Sequence record: PP496444.1 | DNA length: 64,000 bases | Strand: one strand, 5' to 3' | Shown here: one piece after another, positions 1,978 to 63,017 of the stretch | Position numbering within the stretch: position 1 is the first letter of the stretch | Layout of the letters: each line of letters starts with the position of its first letter | Notes under the pieces: generated by a model | The model's database searches: none | Told to the model about the DNA's origin: nothing | What the model saw: only the letters and a program-made list of their open reading frames with translations | Translations under genes and position numbers: made by a program

Positions 1978-2419
1978 TCTAGCCAAGGTAAAGTCCATCA
2001 TGCTTACCCAGCTGGTTCTTGTGCTGATCATCTCCGGGTACTACATGTTCACGGTCGGCCAGCACCGAGATGAGAAAGTCATGCGGTATGCTCTGATGGT
2101 GGATACCAGTGCAGACTCCAGCTACCATAAGTCCAACTACTCGTACAACACGTCTGGGTACTACGTGGACGAAGAGACCAAACTGTACTTCCGCGACGAC
2201 ATCTCGGACAAGCTGTACCGGCAGTTCGAGGCTGGAGGGAACAAGCCTATTAGGATGAGCTGGCCCTACAGCATCGACAAGCGCGAGCAGACAAGCATCG
2301 GCTTCTTCTACATTATGGGCGGCGTAATGTTAGAGGCCATCGCAATCATCCTCCTGATCCACCTAGTTATGAAAGCGTGGGCCAGACATGTACGGGAGCA
2401 GAAACCTAATGTGGATTGA
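1967..2419 (+). CDS. hypothetical membrane protein, two hydrophobic segments
   Basis: ORF track 1916..2419; ATG 1967 overlaps the upstream gene end; hydrophobic runs MLTQLVLVLIISGYYMF and IMGGVMLEAIAIILLIHLVM. Confidence 0.7.
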   Translation: MKANLAKVKSIMLTQLVLVLIISGYYMFTVGQHRDEKVMRYALMVDTSADSSYHKSNYSYNTSGYYVDEETKLYFRDDISDKLYRQFEAGGNKPIRMSWPYSIDKREQTSIGFFYIMGGVMLEAIAIILLIHLVMKAWARHVREQKPNVD

Positions 2420-2807
2420 CTACGTCTGGGGTTACAAACTGTTCGGTGACCTGTACGAAACGGTGCGGGTCAAGTTCCAAAGTCCAGAGATGGATGAACT
2501 GGATAACGTCTTCGTCAAGGAAGCGGATGCGCAGAAGGCAGTGGAGGTGTTGAACCACAAGCCGGAACCCGAAGACACCCTGCTGCATACGTATGCCATG
2601 GGCCGACTGCTTATCGAGATGGTGCAGGGTGAACAGGCCGTGTACAGTATCTTGGCACCTTTGCAAGGGCAAGGGTCAGACTATGATGGGTCCGATGAAT
2701 CCTTTGAGAACAAACTACTGCTCCGAGCCAAGACGGCGTGCTTGATTCGCTTCGACCGACGTGTCACCAAGAACCCACGTAACCTTTCTCTGGCGGCGAT
2801 CCTATGA
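2409..2807 (+). CDS. hypothetical protein
   Basis: ORF track 2388..2807; ATG 2409 overlaps the upstream gene end; ATGA overlap with the next gene. Confidence 0.7.
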   Translation: MWIDYVWGYKLFGDLYETVRVKFQSPEMDELDNVFVKEADAQKAVEVLNHKPEPEDTLLHTYAMGRLLIEMVQGEQAVYSILAPLQGQGSDYDGSDESFENKLLLRAKTACLIRFDRRVTKNPRNLSLAAIL

Positions 2808-3400
2808 ATTCGTATGAGATAAAAGAAGTGCAGGTAGGTATTCATCATAACAATCCAACCTTTAAGTTGATGCGGCGGATACCTAGTCATACCCATCGTG
2901 GTCATATCATCTCGGATGAACAGTTCCGGGTTAAGATGGACACCGTTATGCTGATGGATCTGGCCCACATCACCGAAGCCGAAGTGAATGCAAAGGTGGA
3001 GGAAAGGTGGGTCAAGGACTTGAATTTTAGTCTTCCGGCTGGGGAGGGTGAATACCCTGATCTGAAACTAACGGATGAAGAGATAGCAGCCCACCGCCGC
3101 GCTGATCCAGAGTCGCGACGAGTGACGAAGTATGCCAACGAAGAGAATGGCAACTACAGCAACCAGTGCGCGCACTGTAGTTCTACCTTCATCGGTTACA
3201 AAGGTTTTGGTTCCTGTCAACTGTGCAGTGATCTTCTGTCGTTCCGCCGAGATCAGCGTGAGTTTGAATTCCATGCCAAGGAGAACTTGGGGTTAAGTAC
3301 CAAGAAGCTGGCATCAGGGGAATACCAATCATTCGGGGCTCAGATGGCGTGGGTTACCTGGCAGTACACGGGTGGATACAACAGAGGTGGAAACAAATGA
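2804..3400 (+). CDS. hypothetical protein with CxxC..CxxC zinc-ribbon motif
   Basis: QCAHCSSTFIGYKGFGSCQLC; ATGA coupling at both ends. Confidence 0.75.
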   Translation: MNSYEIKEVQVGIHHNNPTFKLMRRIPSHTHRGHIISDEQFRVKMDTVMLMDLAHITEAEVNAKVEERWVKDLNFSLPAGEGEYPDLKLTDEEIAAHRRADPESRRVTKYANEENGNYSNQCAHCSSTFIGYKGFGSCQLCSDLLSFRRDQREFEFHAKENLGLSTKKLASGEYQSFGAQMAWVTWQYTGGYNRGGNK

Positions 3401-3846
3401 GCGACGATAAAGATCAAGTAGTTGAAGACCGTGACTATCAACAGCCGGTCAACGTCGGCACCGTAGTTACTGACCCGCCAGAAGTTGGCACAGTAGACGG
3501 ACGTAAGATCGTCGTTGTCGGGTCTGGTAGTGGAGGATCTGTGTTCGGGTGTAGCCGCAGTGAAAGAATAAGTACGGCTCGGCGCAGCATAGGTCTGGCC
3601 GTTGCAGCAATGGCTCTTGCTGGTTCCATGGCTATGCCGTCAAACCGTGAAGTAGAACCTTCCCGTCGACGTAAGCCGGAACGTATGGTACCTCGGATAA
3701 TGCCCAAGCAGTGGTACATGGACAGCGGTGGTCACTACAAGAAGACCCCCGTGACCGAGGACGATCATGCAGCCGTCTCAGCCGCCGAAGCCAAACGCCA
3801 GCGGAAAGCTAAGAAGCTTGCTGCCACCCAACCAAAGGAGTCTTGA
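3397..3846 (+). CDS. hypothetical protein
   Basis: ORF track 3349..3846; ATG 3397 in ATGA overlap, SD GAGGTGG upstream. Confidence 0.7.
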   Translation: MSDDKDQVVEDRDYQQPVNVGTVVTDPPEVGTVDGRKIVVVGSGSGGSVFGCSRSERISTARRSIGLAVAAMALAGSMAMPSNREVEPSRRRKPERMVPRIMPKQWYMDSGGHYKKTPVTEDDHAAVSAAEAKRQRKAKKLAATQPKES

Positions 3847-12698: not shown

Positions 12699-12986
12699 TT
12701 AATCGACTCGTACGTTGACGACGGTTACGCCTTCGTATTCCTTCAATCGTTCTATGAAGGTAGATGCTATCTCTTCGGTGGGCACGAAGAGCATATCACG
12801 GGCCACAGTTTCCACCGCGAAGAAGTTGGCATCCGTTTGTACCGAAAGGACCGAAGCCCCTGACATAGAAGACCGATGGGTACTCGCTTCTGTGCCTACA
12901 TCTACGGTAGTGCGAAGCGTGACGCTATACATCTTTGTCACTACGCCTTGTTCCGGCTCAAGTCTCCCAGCTGGCTTATCATTCAT
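12699..12986 (-). CDS. hypothetical protein (95 aa)
   Basis: ORF track 12699..13091; ATG 12986 overlaps the recA end. Confidence 0.6.
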   Translation of the reverse strand: MNDKPAGRLEPEQGVVTKMYSVTLRTTVDVGTEASTHRSSMSGASVLSVQTDANFFAVETVARDMLFVPTEEIASTFIERLKEYEGVTVVNVRVD

Positions 12987-14538
12987 CTTCTTCCACTTCC
13001 TCTTCTTCCTCGTCCAACCCAGCGCCGGACAAGTGGTTGAAATACAACTCCAGGCCACGACCCGAAGAAATCTGAGCGGCCAGCACTTCACGGATGTCGA
13101 AGTCTTTAACTTCCCATTCCGCCGTCAGTTCCTTGCGCGCCTTGCCTTTGAACAGGACCAGTTGTTTAAGGTCCTCCCACGTCAAGTCCAGCTCAGGGAT
13201 AGACTTGCTGTCGGCATGCAGCGTGAAAGACTTCATGTTGCCGGACAGCTGGCCGGTCATACGCAGGTAGTACCACGTGTCCCAGACCGGATCGAAACCA
13301 CGACCTTTACCAGTGGCGTCGCTGATCCACAAGCGCTGCCAGATTTCAAGGTTGTCAACCCCGTACTTGTTCTTGATCGCCTTCATGTTGATGAAGCGAT
13401 AAGTGTCTGTACCGGACGCACCTACGCTTGGTTCTTCCATCGTGGCGCCAGTGGCCGAGATGAAGTCCGGGCAGGATCGAGGGGTCTGCATGATCCGTGC
13501 ACCGGTGGCGTGCTTGATCGCCATGCCGCCAGGTTCATAGTTCGGGTTGCCCATTCGCATGCCCGGATTCTGACGGATCTGGTTGATCGACACCACGGTC
13601 GCCATCTTCTTACGGAGTCGGCCCCACACCTTCTTGATGTGCTTGGAGTGCATACGTGCATCCAGAGCCATACCCCGGCTACCGTCACCGTCTTCCCCTT
13701 CGTCTTCCTCGGTGGTCATCGAGGCAATGGAGTCGAGCAGGATAAGGCACTGCATCATGCCGCCGTTGGGCGACTTCATCCGCAGCTTGCCTTTGTAGAC
13801 GGTGTACTTGCCCTTGAACTTGCTCATGTTCTCTTTGGTGCGGTCATACAGCAGATACCACTCGCCGTTGATATGCACCTTGTCGGGCAGCTTTTTCAGG
13901 ATCGACGACATAACCTTGTAGAACTTCTCGCCCGACGATTCGTTGTAGTAACGAACGCGAGGTGGAACGACGTAGTTGCCTTTGTCGTCCTTCACGCCGA
14001 ACATACGCTTCATGCTGATCTTGATGCCTTGAGCTTCGAGCATGTTGACGATGTAGTCTTCGGCACCGGTGTTCTCATAGTCCCACCAAAAGGACATTGG
14101 AACGCCAGCCAAACAGATGGAACCCAACCACGACATCAGGTTGGTGGACTTGCCCGAGCCTTCCGGCCCTGAGAAGTTGTACCAGCCGCCGGGATAGATA
14201 CCACCCGCCAGCATTAGGTCGGTGCACAGCATCCCCGTGGACACTCGCCCTTCCCGGAGGATCTCCAAGTCCGATACACCTTGGACGATGTTGAAGTGTT
14301 CCTCCACCTCGTCGATCATGGCGGTGACGCCCATCATCTCAAGGATTTCGTCTACCATGTCTTCGCGGGACTTGGCAGGTGGTTCAGCTTTTGCAGCAGA
14401 TGCTTTGCTGGCCCCACGCTTGGCGGGTACCTTGGCATCCTCGATCAGCTTCTCCGCGAGGGCACTGACCTTTTTCTTGGCGGCTACTGTCGCCGTCTTG
14501 ACGGGTTTCGGCTTAGCTTTGGTAGTGGCTGCTGCCAT
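12979..14538 (-). CDS. recA: RecA/UvsX-family recombinase with basic N-terminal and acidic C-terminal extensions
   Basis: VSTG..DL.L.GG; Walker A GPEGSGKST; Walker B ILLDSIASM; ALDAR; INQIR; GG.AIK. Confidence 0.92.
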   Translation of the reverse strand: MAAATTKAKPKPVKTATVAAKKKVSALAEKLIEDAKVPAKRGASKASAAKAEPPAKSREDMVDEILEMMGVTAMIDEVEEHFNIVQGVSDLEILREGRVSTGMLCTDLMLAGGIYPGGWYNFSGPEGSGKSTNLMSWLGSICLAGVPMSFWWDYENTGAEDYIVNMLEAQGIKISMKRMFGVKDDKGNYVVPPRVRYYNESSGEKFYKVMSSILKKLPDKVHINGEWYLLYDRTKENMSKFKGKYTVYKGKLRMKSPNGGMMQCLILLDSIASMTTEEDEGEDGDGSRGMALDARMHSKHIKKVWGRLRKKMATVVSINQIRQNPGMRMGNPNYEPGGMAIKHATGARIMQTPRSCPDFISATGATMEEPSVGASGTDTYRFINMKAIKNKYGVDNLEIWQRLWISDATGKGRGFDPVWDTWYYLRMTGQLSGNMKSFTLHADSKSIPELDLTWEDLKQLVLFKGKARKELTAEWEVKDFDIREVLAAQISSGRGLELYFNHLSGAGLDEEEEEVEEDE

Positions 14539-14561
14539 GGAGATGTACCTGCGTCGTAAAT

Positions 14562-14603
14562 AAAAAATGGGGCACCGACCAGCGAACCGGCAGATGCCCC
14601 ATT
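14562..14603 (-). terminator. intrinsic terminator
   Basis: AATGGGGCA / TGCCCCATT hairpin followed by TTTTTT on the - strand. Confidence 0.8.
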
Positions 14604-14619
14604 AGGGTTGCGCAACAAA

Positions 14620-14796
14620 TCACCTGGATGACTTGCGGCGCTTCGCTTTGACCGTACTCACCGCCTTAAAGCCGGGCTTATTGTAGTCCGGTCTGGCATC
14701 GGCGGCGAGGTTGAACAACCCCCCGCTGCTCGGGTCAAAGCCTTTGGCGGATCGGCTTTTCGGCTTACCGCCGCCGACCTTACCGCCGGCCTGCAG
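14620..14796 (-). other. 58-codon in-frame open extension after the TGA of the acidic protein (candidate readthrough segment)
   Basis: Hand translation LQAGGKVGGGKPKSRSAKGFDPSSGGLFNLAADARPDYNKPGFKAVSTVKAKRRKSSR*; no convincing own start; ends just before the terminator. Confidence 0.5.
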
Positions 14797-15606
14797 TCAC
14801 TCGATGTCGAGATCGATTTTCAGCTTTTTGGCCGCTTTGAGGATCTTGTCCTTACCGGCTTCGACAACCTTCTCGGCGATGGCGTCGGTGTCGTCTTTCT
14901 TGCCGATGGTGATCTTCAGCGCTTTGGCCAGCGACTTGAGTTCGTCTTCGTCGAGTTCTTCGAGGGCGTCTTGGAGTTCTTCTTCCTCCTCCTCTTCCTC
15001 CTCGTTTTCTTCCTCTTCTTCCTCGGACTCCTCGCCCAGTTCGATGTCCAGCTCTTCAGCTGCGTCACGAACGTCGTCTTCGTCTTCTTCGAGCAGCTTC
15101 TCGATGATGGCCGCTTCGTCGTCCTTCTTGCTGAGCTTGATTTCAAGCTCTTTGGCCAGCTTTTTCAGGTCGCCGATGTCGAGTTCTTCGAGTTCGGCTT
15201 CGAGGTCGCCTTCCTCTTTCTCCTCTTCTTCCTCCTCCTCGTCTTTTTCTTCTTCCTCTTCCTCGGACTCCTCCAGTTCGAGTTCGATGTCCAACGCGTC
15301 AGCCGCGTCTTCGATTTCGTCCTGCGTCGCGCCTTCGGCCAGCGCTTCGGCCATGGCTTCTTCGTCAGCGCCCTTGGCGAACTTGACCTTAAGCTTTTTG
15401 CCCAGCTGTTTCAGTTCGTCTTCTTCCAGCTCGGCCAGCGCTTCGATCAAGGCTTCCTTGTCGTCGCCGCCGTCTTTTTCATCACCGCCGTCTTCATCGA
15501 GCTCTTCAGCCAGCTCGATGATTTCCTTGAACGCCGCCTTGGCTTTCTTGTCCTTGGTTGCTTCCATTGCTTCTTCGGCCAGTTCAACGATTTTTTCAAC
15601 AGACAT
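14797..15606 (-). CDS. hyper-acidic protein with three Rho-N/HeH-like repeats
   Basis: ALAELEEDELKQLGKKLKV / ELEELDIGDLKKLAKELEI / ALEELDEDELKSLAKALKI separated by poly-E tracts; SD GAGGA. Confidence 0.85.
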   Translation of the reverse strand: MSVEKIVELAEEAMEATKDKKAKAAFKEIIELAEELDEDGGDEKDGGDDKEALIEALAELEEDELKQLGKKLKVKFAKGADEEAMAEALAEGATQDEIEDAADALDIELELEESEEEEEEKDEEEEEEEKEEGDLEAELEELDIGDLKKLAKELEIKLSKKDDEAAIIEKLLEEDEDDVRDAAEELDIELGEESEEEEEENEEEEEEEEELQDALEELDEDELKSLAKALKITIGKKDDTDAIAEKVVEAGKDKILKAAKKLKIDLDIE

Positions 15607-15704
15607 GATACATCCTCATTACTGGTAGGGTGCCAACTAAGGCTCTTTAATCAACGGGGCGCCTTTTGGCTCACCCCGTTATATGAATGATTTACAGCGG
15701 TTCT

Positions 15705-16787
15705 TCAGCGACGACTTGAACGCGTGGATCTTGTCGAAGTTTTCTCTTTGTCGCGGCTGGTACGGCTGCTGCGTTCCGACCGGCTCGACGTTGATTTACC
15801 GGACTTCTCCGGCTTGTCAGCTTTCGCAGTCTTTTCGCGGCGGGAAGTACGCTCCGGCTTCTCTTCACGGCTGCTGCGCTTGCTGCCTCGCAGTGGACGA
15901 TCCGATTCACGTTTACGCTTGCTGCCCCGGTCGAGATCCTTACCGGCTTTCCCTTCCTCTTCCTCGACTTCCTCAGCATCAGGAGCCTTGGATTCCAAAC
16001 TTGCCACTTCCTTTACAGCATCTGCATAGGACATTGGCTGGTCGAGGTTGCCGAGGATGTCCCACTGCAGATACTTCTGCTCGGTACGGCTCAGCGGGGT
16101 ATGGCCTGTGCTGGAGTCCAGCTGCACGTCATACATATCCGACGCCGACTTCGCGTCTTTGTCGTACGACACCAGCAGGTCACGACCGAACTCGGGATCA
16201 CCCAGCGGCATGATCTGCACGCCCTGCTTGGTTTTCACCTTGTTAGTGTCTTCCAGCTTCTTGATCTTGCCAGCGATGCGGTCAGTAACCCGCATGACGC
16301 GAACCGGGGTCCACGAGGCGCTGTTGATGTTGTCCACGAAGCCGGTCTTCTTCTCGTTGGCCGAGTGTTCTGGGACGCGCTTCGGCTCGCTGTCTTGCAG
16401 TTCCCGCACAATTACCGGTACGTAGTAGTACTTCTTGGTCTGCTTGGGGTTGCTGATATCAGCGAACGGGCATTCGATGGTGGTGTCGAAGGTATCCGCG
16501 TCCCGGTCGAAGTTCAACGGGGTATGCGAGATATTGAACTCACCCTTCGGTGTAACGATCTGGATCGCATACACCACCTCTGGAATCGGATCACCGACGA
16601 TACGCACAGCGATGAAAGCACCACCTGGCGGGTATTCCAGCATCTTCACTTTCTTGTTGAAGTACACCCGCTTGCCGCCGGTCTGGCCAGCATTGGTCGC
16701 ACCGAAACCTTTACGAGCCGGGGCAGCACCAACGCTACCACCTCCGCCAGTACGGGTACGACCTGTTCTTGCACTGTCACGTGCCAT
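15705..16787 (-). CDS. gp32-like single-stranded DNA-binding protein with Arg/Ser/Lys-rich C-terminal tail
   Basis: AVRIVG..; CPF; YYVPVIVR; LGDPEFGRDLLVSYDK..MYDV resembles the gp32-like D.TDPE.GRD....YD pattern; near recA. Confidence 0.65.
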   Translation of the reverse strand: MARDSARTGRTRTGGGGSVGAAPARKGFGATNAGQTGGKRVYFNKKVKMLEYPPGGAFIAVRIVGDPIPEVVYAIQIVTPKGEFNISHTPLNFDRDADTFDTTIECPFADISNPKQTKKYYYVPVIVRELQDSEPKRVPEHSANEKKTGFVDNINSASWTPVRVMRVTDRIAGKIKKLEDTNKVKTKQGVQIMPLGDPEFGRDLLVSYDKDAKSASDMYDVQLDSSTGHTPLSRTEQKYLQWDILGNLDQPMSYADAVKEVASLESKAPDAEEVEEEEGKAGKDLDRGSKRKRESDRPLRGSKRSSREEKPERTSRREKTAKADKPEKSGKSTSSRSERSSRTSRDKEKTSTRSTRSSRR

Positions 16788-16819
16788 GGGACATCCTCTT
16801 TCGGTTAGCTTACATCCCG

Positions 16820-16826
16820 TATTTAC
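16820..16826 (-). promoter_or_regulatory. candidate phage promoter motif GTAAATA (also 21713-19, 26294-300, 57362-68)
   Basis: Same 7-mer 32-69 nt upstream of four - strand starts. Confidence 0.4.
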
Positions 16827-16846
16827 AGGATCTGATTTGGGGTGGA

Positions 16847-17356
16847 TTATTTCGGATCTGAAACTGGCTGCATATCCATCAATTTACCGGACACCAGTAC
16901 AAACACCTCAAGGAAAGCGCGGGTGACCACGTTCTTCTTGCGCTGGGACTCTTGAATCTGCAGCATGGAGTGGAAGACGGCTTCCCGCAACGACGCCGAG
17001 TTACTAAGAGCAGCGTCGAAATACTCGGTAAGAGCCATACCCTCCAGAATCTTGAACGGAATACCCGTGGCCTTCCATTCAACGGGCAGGATCATGGAGT
17101 CTTTGTCGCCCATATAATTAGGCCAGCCCGACTTACCCAGATTGGGAACGTACACCGAAGCGGCATCCAGACCGGACTTGCCAATCTCGGACAGCACACG
17201 ATCCACCTGCATGTCGAACCACGCCCGCAGCGTAGGGTCCATGGCCTCGAACTGGGCAAGGCTCATGGTGGACAGGATCACCGGGGTCAGCGCTGTCTCG
17301 TTCGTGAACACCGGCAGTTCTTTATCGAACGGTGAGCTCTCGTCAGGATTGAACAT
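16847..17356 (-). CDS. hypothetical protein (169 aa)
   Basis: ORF in a co-oriented run, overlapping the upstream gene end. Confidence 0.7.
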   Translation of the reverse strand: MFNPDESSPFDKELPVFTNETALTPVILSTMSLAQFEAMDPTLRAWFDMQVDRVLSEIGKSGLDAASVYVPNLGKSGWPNYMGDKDSMILPVEWKATGIPFKILEGMALTEYFDAALSNSASLREAVFHSMLQIQESQRKKNVVTRAFLEVFVLVSGKLMDMQPVSDPK

Positions 17357-24521: not shown

Positions 24522-25139
24522 TTAGTAGGTATAACGGGGAGCTGCCGGGGCCTCGGAAATGACCAGTTGGTGGGTAGGGAAGAGCGAACCGATCACGATG
24601 CGGAAGTACTGACCTTCGGCGCACTCCGGGACGTTGAACGATACGAAGAACTTGCCGTCGGCGTCATTGCCGCTTTCCAGTCCCATTTCTTCCCAGCGCA
24701 GGATCTTCTGAGCTTCCAGATACTTGGTGTCAGCGATCTCGACGATGGTGACCTCTTTCAGCAGGGTCATCAGGCTGGCGCTGCCCTTCAATGCCTTGAG
24801 CGACAAGCGATAGTACTCATAGCACAGGTCGTTGACCACCTTGAGGAACGTTACGTCACTCACCTTGGGCAGCTTGGTGAAGTCCACCGTGTGGGAATAG
24901 CCCTGCGAACCCAGCTTGCCGCTGATGTTGCGGGTCATTGCAGGTGCACGGGGTGACGAATCTTGGTTGTATTGGGCCAGCGCCTCACGAACGTTGTCCT
25001 GCGCTTCACGTGCTGCCTGCTGCGCTTCGGTCAATGGCCGGTGATGCTGGCCGCGACGAGAACTGGCGTGCTGGAAGGCATCTGCGTTGGAAGCGTTGTG
25101 TTCGGTGCGATAGGCCGGGGTAGGTGCTGGGATAGTCAT
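24522..25139 (-). CDS. hypothetical protein
   Basis: ORF track 24522..25181; ATG 25139 follows the Cas4-like gene. Confidence 0.7.
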   Translation of the reverse strand: MTIPAPTPAYRTEHNASNADAFQHASSRRGQHHRPLTEAQQAAREAQDNVREALAQYNQDSSPRAPAMTRNISGKLGSQGYSHTVDFTKLPKVSDVTFLKVVNDLCYEYYRLSLKALKGSASLMTLLKEVTIVEIADTKYLEAQKILRWEEMGLESGNDADGKFFVSFNVPECAEGQYFRIVIGSLFPTHQLVISEAPAAPRYTY

Positions 25140-29211: not shown

Positions 29212-29524
29212 TGGTAGGATCTCTAGTAATGATTACTGATGGAGGTGGTCCAGTGTCGAACTTCCCGTTCGGACCGGTTTCTACGTAAAACTTGAAATAG
29301 GCCGCAGCAGAGCCGACCGTTGCACCCAAGATCGCAGCCGCTCCCAGACCATCCATCGACGACGCCTTCATCCAGTTGACGACATCGAACGACAGCTTCA
29401 TCCAGAAGAACAGCAGCATGATGGGGAAGATCCGCCATGCGACCATGACGTATTGCACGTGGTCCACAACAGACCTGAACCACGGATTGATGTGTTGCGG
29501 ATCAGGTTTCTGTGACGAAGCCAT
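29204..29524 (-). CDS. putative holin
   Basis: 106 aa, two hydrophobic helices, between the amidase-like and spanin genes. Confidence 0.6.
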   Translation of the reverse strand: MASSQKPDPQHINPWFRSVVDHVQYVMVAWRIFPIMLLFFWMKLSFDVVNWMKASSMDGLGAAAILGATVGSAAAYFKFYVETGPNGKFDTGPPPSVIITRDPTNE

Positions 29525-29996
29525 ACGGCACCCCTTGCAGTGTTTGCACTAGCGCTTGTACGTCGAAGCATGGACTCTCAGTCGGCGGTTGTCCCTCCAC
29601 CTGGGGATGTTCCTTGGCCCCACGTATCTCCGTGACGGGAATCCTGTACTTGCTGACCAGACTGTCCAGCAGATAGCGCAGTGAGTCCTTCTGCACCGGC
29701 GTGAAGTTGTCCACCCATTCGCCTTTGTTGTTCAATCCCCCGATCAAGCAGATACCCAAGTTGCCCTGAGTCTTGTTCGGGGTGTGCATGCCCACTGACC
29801 TGTCGTCCCGACCATTGACCACGTTCCCGTTCGGCAGGATCAGGTAGTGGAAGTCGATGAACAGTCCGGTGTGTGAGCACTTGCGCTTCGGGTCTGACTG
29901 GCATGCCTTCATGGTCTGGGAGTTCAGGAATTCAAGCCATGAGAACCCCGTCATCTTCTCAGTCCCGGAGCAATGGATTGTTACCTCTGAAATCAT
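29502..29996 (-). CDS. T7-lysozyme-like N-acetylmuramoyl-L-alanine amidase fold, apparently lacking catalytic residues
   Basis: TIHCS, HYLI..NG.V..GR, GMH, NLGICLIGG, FTPVQKDSL, PCFDV. Confidence 0.8.
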   Translation of the reverse strand: MISEVTIHCSGTEKMTGFSWLEFLNSQTMKACQSDPKRKCSHTGLFIDFHYLILPNGNVVNGRDDRSVGMHTPNKTQGNLGICLIGGLNNKGEWVDNFTPVQKDSLRYLLDSLVSKYRIPVTEIRGAKEHPQVEGQPPTESPCFDVQALVQTLQGVPYGFVTET

Positions 29997-61037: not shown

Positions 61038-63017
61038 TCAATTGATTCCGTACTTTTCGATGAAAGCGGAATAAGGGGTTTTATCGCCTCCGAAGGAATT
61101 GACCTTCGAGTTACTTGCCCCGTCTTTGTAGATCAGGGTCGTGGTAAGATTCGCGCTGAATGGCCCGATGACGCCGCCGTTCTTCACGATGAACTCGTTT
61201 ACCTTGCTGTCCCGTACGCCGGTCAAGTAGAAGCGCTGACCTTTGAACAACTGGGACGCCACCCGAACCTTCTTCGGGGGTTTCGGCAGCACGTACGTCA
61301 ACCCAGCCTTGGTGTACGCCATAAAGGCGGTCATGAAGGCCGGAAGTGCTGCAATGAACTGATCCGCACGCTTAGGTCCGAATCCATCCAACTCTGCCAG
61401 CTTTTCCCGCAATGCCTCACGGGCAGCTCTGGTCCGCTGCAAGCCCGCAGGATCGCCCAGGCTCAACGCTGCCGGTTTCAGCAGTGTGAGTCCCATGCCG
61501 TGGCCGAACGCCCCGCTGGCAACCATTAGGTCGGCCAGGTCAGCGTCCACGATACAGTCGGCCAGCGCCGCAACGAACTTCTTGGCCGTCGGGGCGCCGA
61601 AACCGGCTTGCTCGACCAGTTCTTTGGCGAACCGGATCGGAGTTTTGGTCACTTTACGAATTAGGCCCTGTACGCCGCCAACGTCCATGTACTCTAGCAT
61701 AGCGTCAAACGTGGCTTCCTTGAACCCTTCCAGACCGAGCGTCACGAAGAAGAACGTCATGGACTTCGTGAGCTGTTGCTCTCCGCTGCCGATGGTGCGG
61801 ATGTTGACGCTGTTCTCATCCCAGTCGTACGAACCGGCTTTGGGCAGATCGGCTTTGCGTGCCGGAGTGACCACACCTGTGATATAGGGGATCACGTCAC
61901 CAGACCGGACTAGGGTAATGACAGCACCCTTCCCGATCTTGTTGTCCTTGATGAACTTGGCATTGTGCCCTGTGGCCCACGTCACCTTGACGCCAGCCAG
62001 TCGTACCGGTGTGATCTTGACGCGGGGCTTGAGTGTCCCGTATCTTGATTCGTTCCACTGGACCAGCTCGACCGTTGCCGTTGCCACCTCTGACATCAGT
62101 GCGGACTTGAAGGCGAACTGATAGTCCGGGTTACCTGCGCTCGACGGAATACGACCCACCTTGGTCGTGGACACGATCACGCCGTCCATCTCGTATATCG
62201 ACTTCTTGCGCCGGTCCAGCAGATACGTGGTCAGCTCATTGATGTCCAGCCGCAGCACCTTCTTGACCGTGGGGATCAGGAAGCCCATGGCCTTGAGTTT
62301 GGCGAACTGCTTGTCCACGTCCATGGCAGGCTTGACGATCTGGTACATGACCACTTTGATCTTCTTGCCTTTGAATACTGGCGGAATGATCTTGCTGTTC
62401 GCGGCACCGGCCACCAGATTGCGTGGGTTGGCAAAGTCATCCTTGAACTGCTCGAAGGTGGCCACCGGCATGATCAGCTCGCCCCTGCCTTGCCAGCCAT
62501 TGGGAATCGGTGGCAGGTCCAGATAAGGCGCCACGTGGCTGATGTCCAAGCCTTGGTTACCATCGCCACGGGTGTACAGCCCCGGCTTCTTGGGATTGGC
62601 TGTCCCTTTGATGCCGATGGAGATACCGTCCAACTTGTCCGACAGCACATAAGGGCCTGGGTTAGCCACGGCCCAGCGCTGGATGGACTTCTCATCCAGA
62701 TACTTGTTCATGCTGCCCATACCGAACGGGAGCGATGTCTTGTTCAGCTCGTTGGACTGCGAACCCACCTGATACAGCTTCTTGTCCACGGTGAGGATTA
62801 CGGTCTCGTACTTGTTGAACTCCTCATCCGTCACGACAGGCACACCGGCGTAGTAGGCGTCTTTCAACAATCCGTAGGCTTCAGCCAGTTGCTTCTTGGG
62901 TACGGACTTCGCCGCTTCCACCTGCATGGCTTTATTAGCCGTGTGGATAATACCGAACACGAAGTCTTTCAGTTCTTGGCGACCTTTTTTGGTGCCTATG
63001 GTGAACTTGGTCGCCAT
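61038..63017 (-). CDS. ligA: NAD+-dependent DNA ligase
   Basis: YYAG..VTDEEF (Ia), SDKLDGIS (KxDG), RGDG..G.DI, RGEL, NPRN..AG, DGVIV, HN, SGDVIP, C-terminal BRCT-like FYLTG. Confidence 0.92.
   Translation of the reverse strand: MATKFTIGTKKGRQELKDFVFGIIHTANKAMQVEAAKSVPKKQLAEAYGLLKDAYYAGVPVVTDEEFNKYETVILTVDKKLYQVGSQSNELNKTSLPFGMGSMNKYLDEKSIQRWAVANPGPYVLSDKLDGISIGIKGTANPKKPGLYTRGDGNQGLDISHVAPYLDLPPIPNGWQGRGELIMPVATFEQFKDDFANPRNLVAGAANSKIIPPVFKGKKIKVVMYQIVKPAMDVDKQFAKLKAMGFLIPTVKKVLRLDINELTTYLLDRRKKSIYEMDGVIVSTTKVGRIPSSAGNPDYQFAFKSALMSEVATATVELVQWNESRYGTLKPRVKITPVRLAGVKVTWATGHNAKFIKDNKIGKGAVITLVRSGDVIPYITGVVTPARKADLPKAGSYDWDENSVNIRTIGSGEQQLTKSMTFFFVTLGLEGFKEATFDAMLEYMDVGGVQGLIRKVTKTPIRFAKELVEQAGFGAPTAKKFVAALADCIVDADLADLMVASGAFGHGMGLTLLKPAALSLGDPAGLQRTRAAREALREKLAELDGFGPKRADQFIAALPAFMTAFMAYTKAGLTYVLPKPPKKVRVASQLFKGQRFYLTGVRDSKVNEFIVKNGGVIGPFSANLTTTLIYKDGASNSKVNSFGGDKTPYSAFIEKYGIN

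Follow-up and report, generated by a model that had tools for sequence, protein, structure and literature searches.

The DNA analyzed here is a 64,000-nucleotide stretch (the window) of sequence record PP496444.1, Pseudomonas phage vB_PpuM-Peetri (hereafter Peetri), and the feature in question is a candidate leaky UGA stop codon that ends the gene of a hyper-acidic protein and is followed in the same reading frame by 58 sense codons for a short basic peptide. The 4-kb region that was compared is 100% identical to the Peetri record, in which positions are offset from those of the window by 62000 (record position minus 62000 equals window position). Peetri, a jumbo phage, is a 200-kb myovirus whose host is P. 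putida. With eight sister phages that share 91–94% identity across a 4-kb query (window positions 12900–16900), it makes up the “genus cluster G3 jumbo phages” of the CEPEST collection, and recoding is not mentioned in the paper describing that collection (PMC7616413).

The genes surrounding the feature lie on the minus strand in the order sigma factor, two small genes, single-strand DNA-binding protein (SSB), a 269-residue hypothetical protein, a gap of ~258 nt, and a UvsX-like recombinase (Table 1). The hypothetical protein is the hyper-acidic one, and the extension falls within the gap behind it, where it is left without annotation in 11 of 11 GenBank records. A preliminary description of the stretch had reported that the frame stays open past GAG TGA; this was confirmed on the minus strand, where 58 codons lead to a second TGA, and both remaining minus-strand frames over the extension are interrupted by stops. 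Its view of the extension as gene-like in codon usage also holds, with a GC content by codon position of 0.55/0.57/0.78 compared with third-position values of 0.67–0.73 in the neighboring genes, as does the lack of a convincing start in Peetri, where the only canonical in-frame start codons are a TTG at codon 27, which falls inside the conserved core of the peptide, and a GTG at codon 46. The terminator that had been placed just past the extension was borne out as a hairpin with a U-run, which starts 18 nt past the second stop. The UvsX-like gene begins downstream of this hairpin, at position 14538. Other TGA-ended open reading frames (ORFs) of the window are followed by 70–92 open in-frame codons (24567–24956 on the plus strand; 29502–29996 and 61038–63017 on the minus strand).

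Table 1. Features of the locus, in window coordinates
Feature	Coordinates	Strand	Evidence or remark
Hyper-acidic ORF Peetri_00095, annotated “hypothetical”, 269 aa	14797..15606	(-)	ORF, charge, repeats
In-frame TGA, proposed leaky stop, next base C	14797..14799	(-)	TGA at matching position in L010, L011, L016, L017
Candidate readthrough extension, 58 sense codons (14623-14796) and TGA 14620-14622	14620..14796	(-)	Cross-lineage peptide conservation, dN/dS
Conserved peptide core of extension, codons 19-42	14671..14742	(-)	Lineage alignments
C-terminal Lys/Arg cluster of extension, codons 50-58	14623..14649	(-)	Five-lineage alignment
Intrinsic-terminator-like GC-rich hairpin and U-run	~14562..14601	(-)	18 nt past extension stop
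UvsX/RecA-like recombinase, downstream neighbor	12979..14538	(-)	Anchor for locating relatives
Phage single-strand DNA-binding protein, basic Ser/Arg/Lys C-terminal tail, upstream neighbor	15705..16787	(-)	phrog_15004, E = 1.4e-34

Conservation across sister phages and deeply diverged lineages

The TGA, the open 58-codon frame, and the stop that closes it are kept in nine of the nine cluster G3 phages (Peetri and its eight sisters), and the terminator hairpin is conserved among them as well. Because nine independent assemblies carry the same TGA, a sequencing error is ruled out. The 174-nt extension contains 13 variable columns across these genomes, distributed 3/3/7 over the three codon positions, and its synonymous divergence (dS) is 0.10–0.13, as opposed to 0.18–0.44 in the flanking genes. 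The two intergenic segments of the locus, 14539–14619 and 15607–15704, are ~98% identical among the nine phages, while the adjacent coding genes are 93–96% identical; regulatory elements, or a tract that recombined recently, may account for this high conservation.

More distant relatives were located by tblastn with the 58-residue peptide and then with UvsX as an anchor in the protein database, the extension and the acidic ORF being used as separate search queries. Tblastn returned only very weak matches, in two Vibrio coralliilyticus phages (E = 6 and 9), both of which lie precisely within the unannotated gap that occupies the syntenic position ahead of recA. These phages, GR11A and GR7B (loci L010 and L011), have a UvsX that is 47–48% identical to that of Peetri and share with each other the order sigma factor, SSB-like protein, acidic repeat protein ending in TGA, in-frame extension, double TAA, hairpin, and RecA. 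Their extensions comprise 50 codons (L010:3453–3602) and 44 codons (L011:3471–3602), respectively, with the tandem TAA TAA at 3603–3608 in either locus. Two metagenome contigs provide further lineages: in L016 (UvsX 53% identical), the acidic gene at 2207–3184 ends in TGA and is followed by 79 in-frame codons, and in L017 (UvsX 49% identical, intein-bearing), the TGA of the acidic gene at 266–268 is followed by 41. All four deep lineages have in common the order SSB, acidic repeat gene, TGA, in-frame extension, hairpin, and RecA, and none has DNA similarity to Peetri outside recA. Hairpins analogous to that of Peetri directly follow the extension stop in each; with a terminator past the extension stop in every lineage, the extension belongs to the mRNA.

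Beyond these lineages, the arrangement changes. Loci L019 and L020 (UvsX 45–47% identical) have an acidic repeat gene that lacks the extension and ends in TAA-TAG and TAA, respectively. A separate acidic gene is absent from loci whose UvsX homologues are at most 40% identical (L021, L026–L029) and from the PaBG, JA11, RSL1, and NCTB phages; in all of these, the SSB has a long alternating acidic/basic tail and RecA comes directly next. Searches of IMG/VR, JGI metagenomes, and GTDB genomes, made with UvsX and tail alignments or a degenerate DNA pattern, gave no further clade members. The JGI search returned only PaBG-like loci (L027–L030), and the GR7B and L017 tails, used as tblastn queries, led to no further phages. 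Several of the UvsX/RecA homologues are interrupted by inteins or homing endonucleases (L017, 1281–3962; P0008, P0013, and P0032) that match the LAGLIDADG and intein_splicing families of Pfam.

The stop codon ahead of the extension is TGA in five of five lineages (Peetri and the four deep ones). In the AT-richer L010, L011, L016, and L017, TGA ends only 3 of 22 neighboring genes, and the extension’s own stop is TAA in four of the five lineages, doubled in two. Orthologues with a sense codon at this position, which the preliminary description had named as a sign of mutation or error, do not occur among the nine cluster G3 phages and the four deep lineages, all of which keep the TGA. The open frame past it spans 41–79 codons. 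The spacing between the TGA and the conserved core differs among lineages by several codons, in each case by complete codons and with no intervening stop; since the peptide stays in frame despite this variation, insertions and deletions have always been of whole codons. Weak similarity, in an Asn/Gly-rich stretch, begins within the first few codons past the TGA.

Similarity of the extension peptides was assessed by comparing local alignment scores with those of 2000 shuffles, stops in the control frames being marked X for scoring. The resulting z values are 11.8 for Peetri–GR11A, 10.3 for Peetri–GR7B, 8.7 for Peetri–L017, 15.3 for GR11A–L017, and 15.6 for GR7B–L017. In most lineages, stops interrupt the two remaining sense frames, which were rejected as coding because they give only background scores across lineages; the raised values seen for GR11A against GR7B stem from the DNA similarity of that pair. 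On the opposite strand, no frame is open in all lineages, and the intermediate scores of one antisense frame are expected opposite a conserved sense frame. Antisense coding was rejected on account of the stops in those frames.

The substitution pattern points the same way. Between GR11A and GR7B, the extension has a dS of 1.31 and a nonsynonymous-to-synonymous ratio (dN/dS) of 0.17, which is close to the value of the acidic ORF (0.20), that of RecA being 0.07, and differences in the ungapped extension are distributed 6/3/15 over the codon positions. Judged by these comparisons, the extension frame evolves as protein-coding sequence under purifying selection, which answers in the affirmative the preliminary description’s question of whether the downstream peptide is conserved.

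Across the five lineages, the invariant alignment columns are a Gly-Gly pair, one Ala, and two Lys. Two hydrophobic residues follow the Gly-Gly pair; a hydrophobic pair and Pro, Ser, Asn, Asp, and Asn-x-Pro positions around Gly-Gly are common to four of the five, and a Lys/Arg-rich run ends the extension in all five. The Peetri extension has a net charge of +11 and an isoelectric point of 11.2; by lineage, net charges range from +6 to +11 for the extensions versus −29 to −77 for the acidic bodies. The earlier characterization of the extension as a basic tail is thus correct with respect to its Lys/Arg cluster but incomplete, as the tail is more than a basic patch and has a conserved non-basic core. 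The other proteins of the Peetri genome were scanned for the tail motif, which might have pointed to a docking site in common, without a second occurrence, and no tail homologue was found in PHROGs, Pfam, NCBIfam, the PDB, or a word search of 5.8 billion proteins. An exhaustive HMMER search of 1.84 billion representatives with the tail gave two matches, P0037 and P0036. The former was rejected as a spurious repeat protein; the latter (E = 1.7e-11, 59.7 bits, no matched stretch listed) has no BLASTP alignment to the tail and was treated as compositional.

Proposed readthrough and its alternatives

Conserved programmed (leaky) UGA readthrough that yields a minor, C-terminally extended isoform in ~200-kb tailed phages of Pseudomonas and Vibrio is the probable explanation of this arrangement, with some room left for others. 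Conservation of both the TGA and the in-frame peptide supports the interpretation first offered in the preliminary description; passage of translation through the stop, the inserted residue, the efficiency, and the role of the tail are what we infer from sequence comparison.

Several observations weigh against readthrough or temper it. (i) The five lineages form one clade and are not fully independent samples. (ii) At least 58 open codons follow the stop in 9 of the 58 long ORFs of the window, and the authors’ estimate from base composition is that a 58-codon open frame would arise by chance with P ~0.13; length alone is therefore not beyond chance, and significance rests only on the comparative data. 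TGA terminates 29 of the same 58 ORFs, making it the commonest ordinary stop, and TGA-C is likewise an ordinary stop context. (iii) The L016 extension reaches a z of only 2–4 against Peetri, GR11A, and GR7B and ~0 against L017, and has in common with the others only the Gly-Gly-hydrophobic core and the Lys tail. (iv) An in-frame ATG with a plausible Shine-Dalgarno sequence in GR11A and an in-frame GTG in GR7B, both located before the core, make internal initiation possible in these two phages. (v) Neither the word search nor the exhaustive HMMER search turned up a fusion of the two parts in which a sense codon takes the place of the stop. (vi) Neither the base at +4 nor the codon 5′ of the stop is conserved, and no conserved or unusually stable RNA structure was found past the stop in the five lineages (z = −0.6 to −2.0); readthrough efficiency may only be at a basal level.

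Stimulatory context, such as a C at +4 or a 3′ RNA structure, is common in bacterial readthrough without being obligatory. The weak UGA-C context stressed in the preliminary description is real in Peetri, and a C at this position is known to weaken termination (accessible text of PMC7026636 and PMC5009743), but it is not a conserved determinant, the +4 base being C/A/A/A/G in the five lineages.

The main rival holds that the extension is a separate small gene with its own, partly non-canonical initiation, whose shared frame with the acidic ORF is a coincidence. Selection on the peptide is silent about how the peptide is translated, and the GR11A ATG, which comes after an AAGGG-type Shine-Dalgarno-like sequence, would serve such a gene, as would the GTG of GR7B. 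However, the L017 extension has no in-frame ATG, GTG, or TTG at all, and in Peetri and its eight sisters the conserved core is not preceded by any canonical in-frame start. Coincidence would also have to account for a common frame without an intervening stop and for a stop kept specifically as TGA in all five lineages despite insertions and deletions, as well as for the weak Asn/Gly-rich similarity that sets in a few codons or less past the TGA. A separate gene is therefore considered unlikely, though less so than the explanations that follow.

A constraint on nucleic acid and not on a peptide, in the form of a structure in the 3′ untranslated region, a small RNA, or a signal for UvsX expression, would fit the sister phages, in which the stretch and both intergenic flanks are conserved at ~98%, above the neighboring genes, and the dS of the extension is below that of the flanking genes. 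Nucleotide-level constraint may indeed overlap coding constraint in the extension. As the sole cause it is improbable, given that the deep lineages lack nucleotide similarity yet show amino acid similarity in exactly one frame, that GR11A and GR7B differ mostly at third positions at a near-saturated dS of 1.3, and that Rfam gives no match and none of the folds is conserved or significantly stable.

Recoding of UGA by other means (selenocysteine insertion, a phage suppressor tRNA or code change, or in-frame “stop hopping”) is suggested by the fact that the stop is always UGA, the selenocysteine codon and the one most often reassigned, and hopping could mimic readthrough (accessible text of PMC5009743). 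Each variant meets an obstacle, which leaves the group very unlikely. For selenocysteine, there is no Rfam element, and no hairpin recurs at a constant distance 3′ of the UGA when the predicted structures of the five lineages are compared; a code change conflicts with the use of TGA as the commonest ordinary stop; and hopping requires matching codons on either side of the stop, which is not what is found. A frameshift was rejected since the extension is in frame and no slippery run lies at the stop. As to a suppressor tRNA, ARAGORN finds none in the 200-kb Peetri genome, where its sole match is a doubtful 81-nt tRNA-Gly(GCC) at PP496444.1 8353–8433, inside coding sequence Peetri_00006. This tRNA, which may be falsely predicted, was probably called when the genome was first run through Prokka, locus tag 00007 being absent from the numbering of the coding sequences.

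Finally, the open frame might be spurious, owing to chance, a sequencing error, or a nonsense mutation that recently shortened the gene. These alternatives, which the preliminary description had itself listed, are excluded: a 58-codon open extension is not rare in a genome of 56% GC, but the identical TGA recurs in nine independently assembled genomes and four deep lineages, and purifying selection still acts on the downstream peptide where synonymous divergence is near saturation.

The acidic protein, a proposed mechanism, and related systems

The acidic protein of Peetri consists of 42% Asp and Glu, carries a net charge of −77, and, as read by eye, contains three repeats of ~55 residues, each with a helix pair, separated by poly-Glu runs. 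The acidic proteins of seven lineages are homologous. Sequence searches of Pfam, PHROGs, NCBIfam, and the PDB gave no significant family for the protein, the below-threshold Pfam matches being DUF7440 (19.5 bits against a cut-off of 25) and, weakly, FANC_SAP and Slx4; a profile search was swamped by low-complexity candidates. In a profile-profile comparison, the seven-lineage profile aligns with 95% probability to residues 258–355 of the metagenomic protein P0039. This stretch covers matches to Ish1 (257–292) and Rho_N (260–291), and the best SAP match of P0039, at 134–153, lies outside it. On the strength of the Ish1 and Rho_N matches, the repeats are probably helix-extended-helix (HeH) modules of the SAP/Rho_N type. 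A single-sequence AlphaFold2 model of the acidic protein is all-helical and was set aside, its predicted local distance difference test score of 62 being too low for use. A 305-codon Ser-rich ORF antisense to the acidic gene (14711–15628, plus strand), which misleads a simple choice of the longest ORF, is a by-product of the GAA/GAG-rich sense strand and no gene.

The neighboring SSB also has a charged C-terminus. In Peetri, the Vibrio phages, and L016, it ends in a basic Lys/Arg/Ser-rich tail, and in less closely related jumbo phages (PaBG, JA11, RSL1, NCTB, and metagenome loci) it has a tail of 150–250 residues in which poly-Asp/Glu blocks alternate with Lys-rich ones. The separate acidic protein may do the work of this acidic/basic tail.

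In the proposed mechanism, most ribosomes would stop at the UGA and release a strongly acidic, presumably all-helical protein of SAP/HeH-like helix pairs and poly-Glu linkers. A minority would decode the UGA with a near-cognate host tRNA, by analogy most likely tRNA-Trp, and continue for 41–79 codons to a strong stop just ahead of the transcription terminator. The long isoform would thereby gain (i) a Gly/Lys-rich linker, (ii) a conserved peptide of ~20 residues with Gly-Gly and hydrophobic residues, and (iii) a terminal Lys/Arg cluster. The conserved peptide could act as a docking motif and the basic cluster as an anchor to nucleic acid or an acidic surface; in combination, the two would hold a small, constant share of the acidic protein on a replication or recombination partner. 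Different DNA binding by the two isoforms, as proposed in the preliminary description, is conjectural. A bolder and doubtful version envisages a regulated switch, in which the phage or the physiology of the host cell alters UGA decoding during infection, for example through RF2 (release factor 2) availability or tRNA state, such that the tailed isoform is stage-specific and docks the acidic protein on the SSB/UvsX machinery or DNA. If this were true, regulated readthrough would constitute a recoding-based developmental timer in jumbo double-stranded DNA (dsDNA) phages.

To our knowledge, well-supported functional stop-codon readthrough has been described in few cases in bacteria and their viruses, the RNA phage Qbeta being the example from phages that textbooks give. 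Among the stop codons, UGA is the one most readily read through, and the C-terminal additions that result from readthrough tend to be disordered (PMC7026636). The Qbeta minor coat protein A1, which arises by ~5% UGA readthrough of the coat gene (Table 1 of PMC7026636), is mechanistically closest to the present case, along with conserved readthrough extensions of eukaryotes. As is proposed here, a single UGA ends a phage gene, a near-cognate host tRNA decodes it, and a minority extended isoform results with no suppressor tRNA or code change. In contrast, Qbeta is a small single-stranded RNA phage, and its extension, whose product was demonstrated experimentally, forms a large folded domain in a virion protein, whereas the present candidate belongs to the SSB/recombinase module of a 200-kb dsDNA phage, adds a short, probably disordered peptide, and is known from sequence alone.

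Readthrough extensions of animals and fungi, such as the peroxisomal targeting tails of MDH1 and LDHB, were found by comparative genomics (PMC4207609, PMC5133446). They resemble the phage extension in how they are detected, through a conserved leaky UGA and a coding signature beyond the stop, and they carry a short linear motif that alters location or binding. Unlike the phage extension, in which positions +4 to +6 are not conserved, they depend on eRF1 and a defined context of the UGA-CUA type. Tailed phages are known to produce isoforms by programmed −1 frameshifting, for example the tail assembly chaperone pair G/GT (accessible text of PMC5009743). Such frameshifts, like the readthrough proposed here, recode the 3′ end of a dsDNA-phage gene and set a ratio of short to extended protein, but they rely on a slippery heptamer and move into another frame; the present extension keeps the frame of the acidic ORF, no slippery site is present, and the stop would be decoded. 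The C-terminal tails of PaBG/RSL1/JA11-type SSBs are alike in belonging to the same module (sigma factor, SSB, and RecA) and in interspersing acidic with Lys-rich stretches. They differ in that the acidic/basic repeats lie within the SSB polypeptide, with no separate acidic gene, TGA, or extension.

No readthrough case in a tailed dsDNA phage appears in the accessible text of two reviews, PMC7026636 and PMC5009743, the latter being mainly about frameshifting. In the searched literature, as far as its text was accessible, no report of this locus or of conserved readthrough in tailed dsDNA phages was found, which is no proof of novelty.

The candidate spans deeply diverged Pseudomonas and Vibrio phages and sits in a core SSB/recombinase module, with natural controls at hand in the related lineages that have TAA and no tail. 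Its conserved peptide is missing from annotation pipelines and protein databases, with no true match among 1.84 billion representatives. If confirmed, the readthrough would make comparative “beyond-the-stop” scans of phage genomes worthwhile, would open to study a natural bacterial readthrough context without an obvious stimulator, and would add a hidden isoform to the replication biology of jumbo phages.

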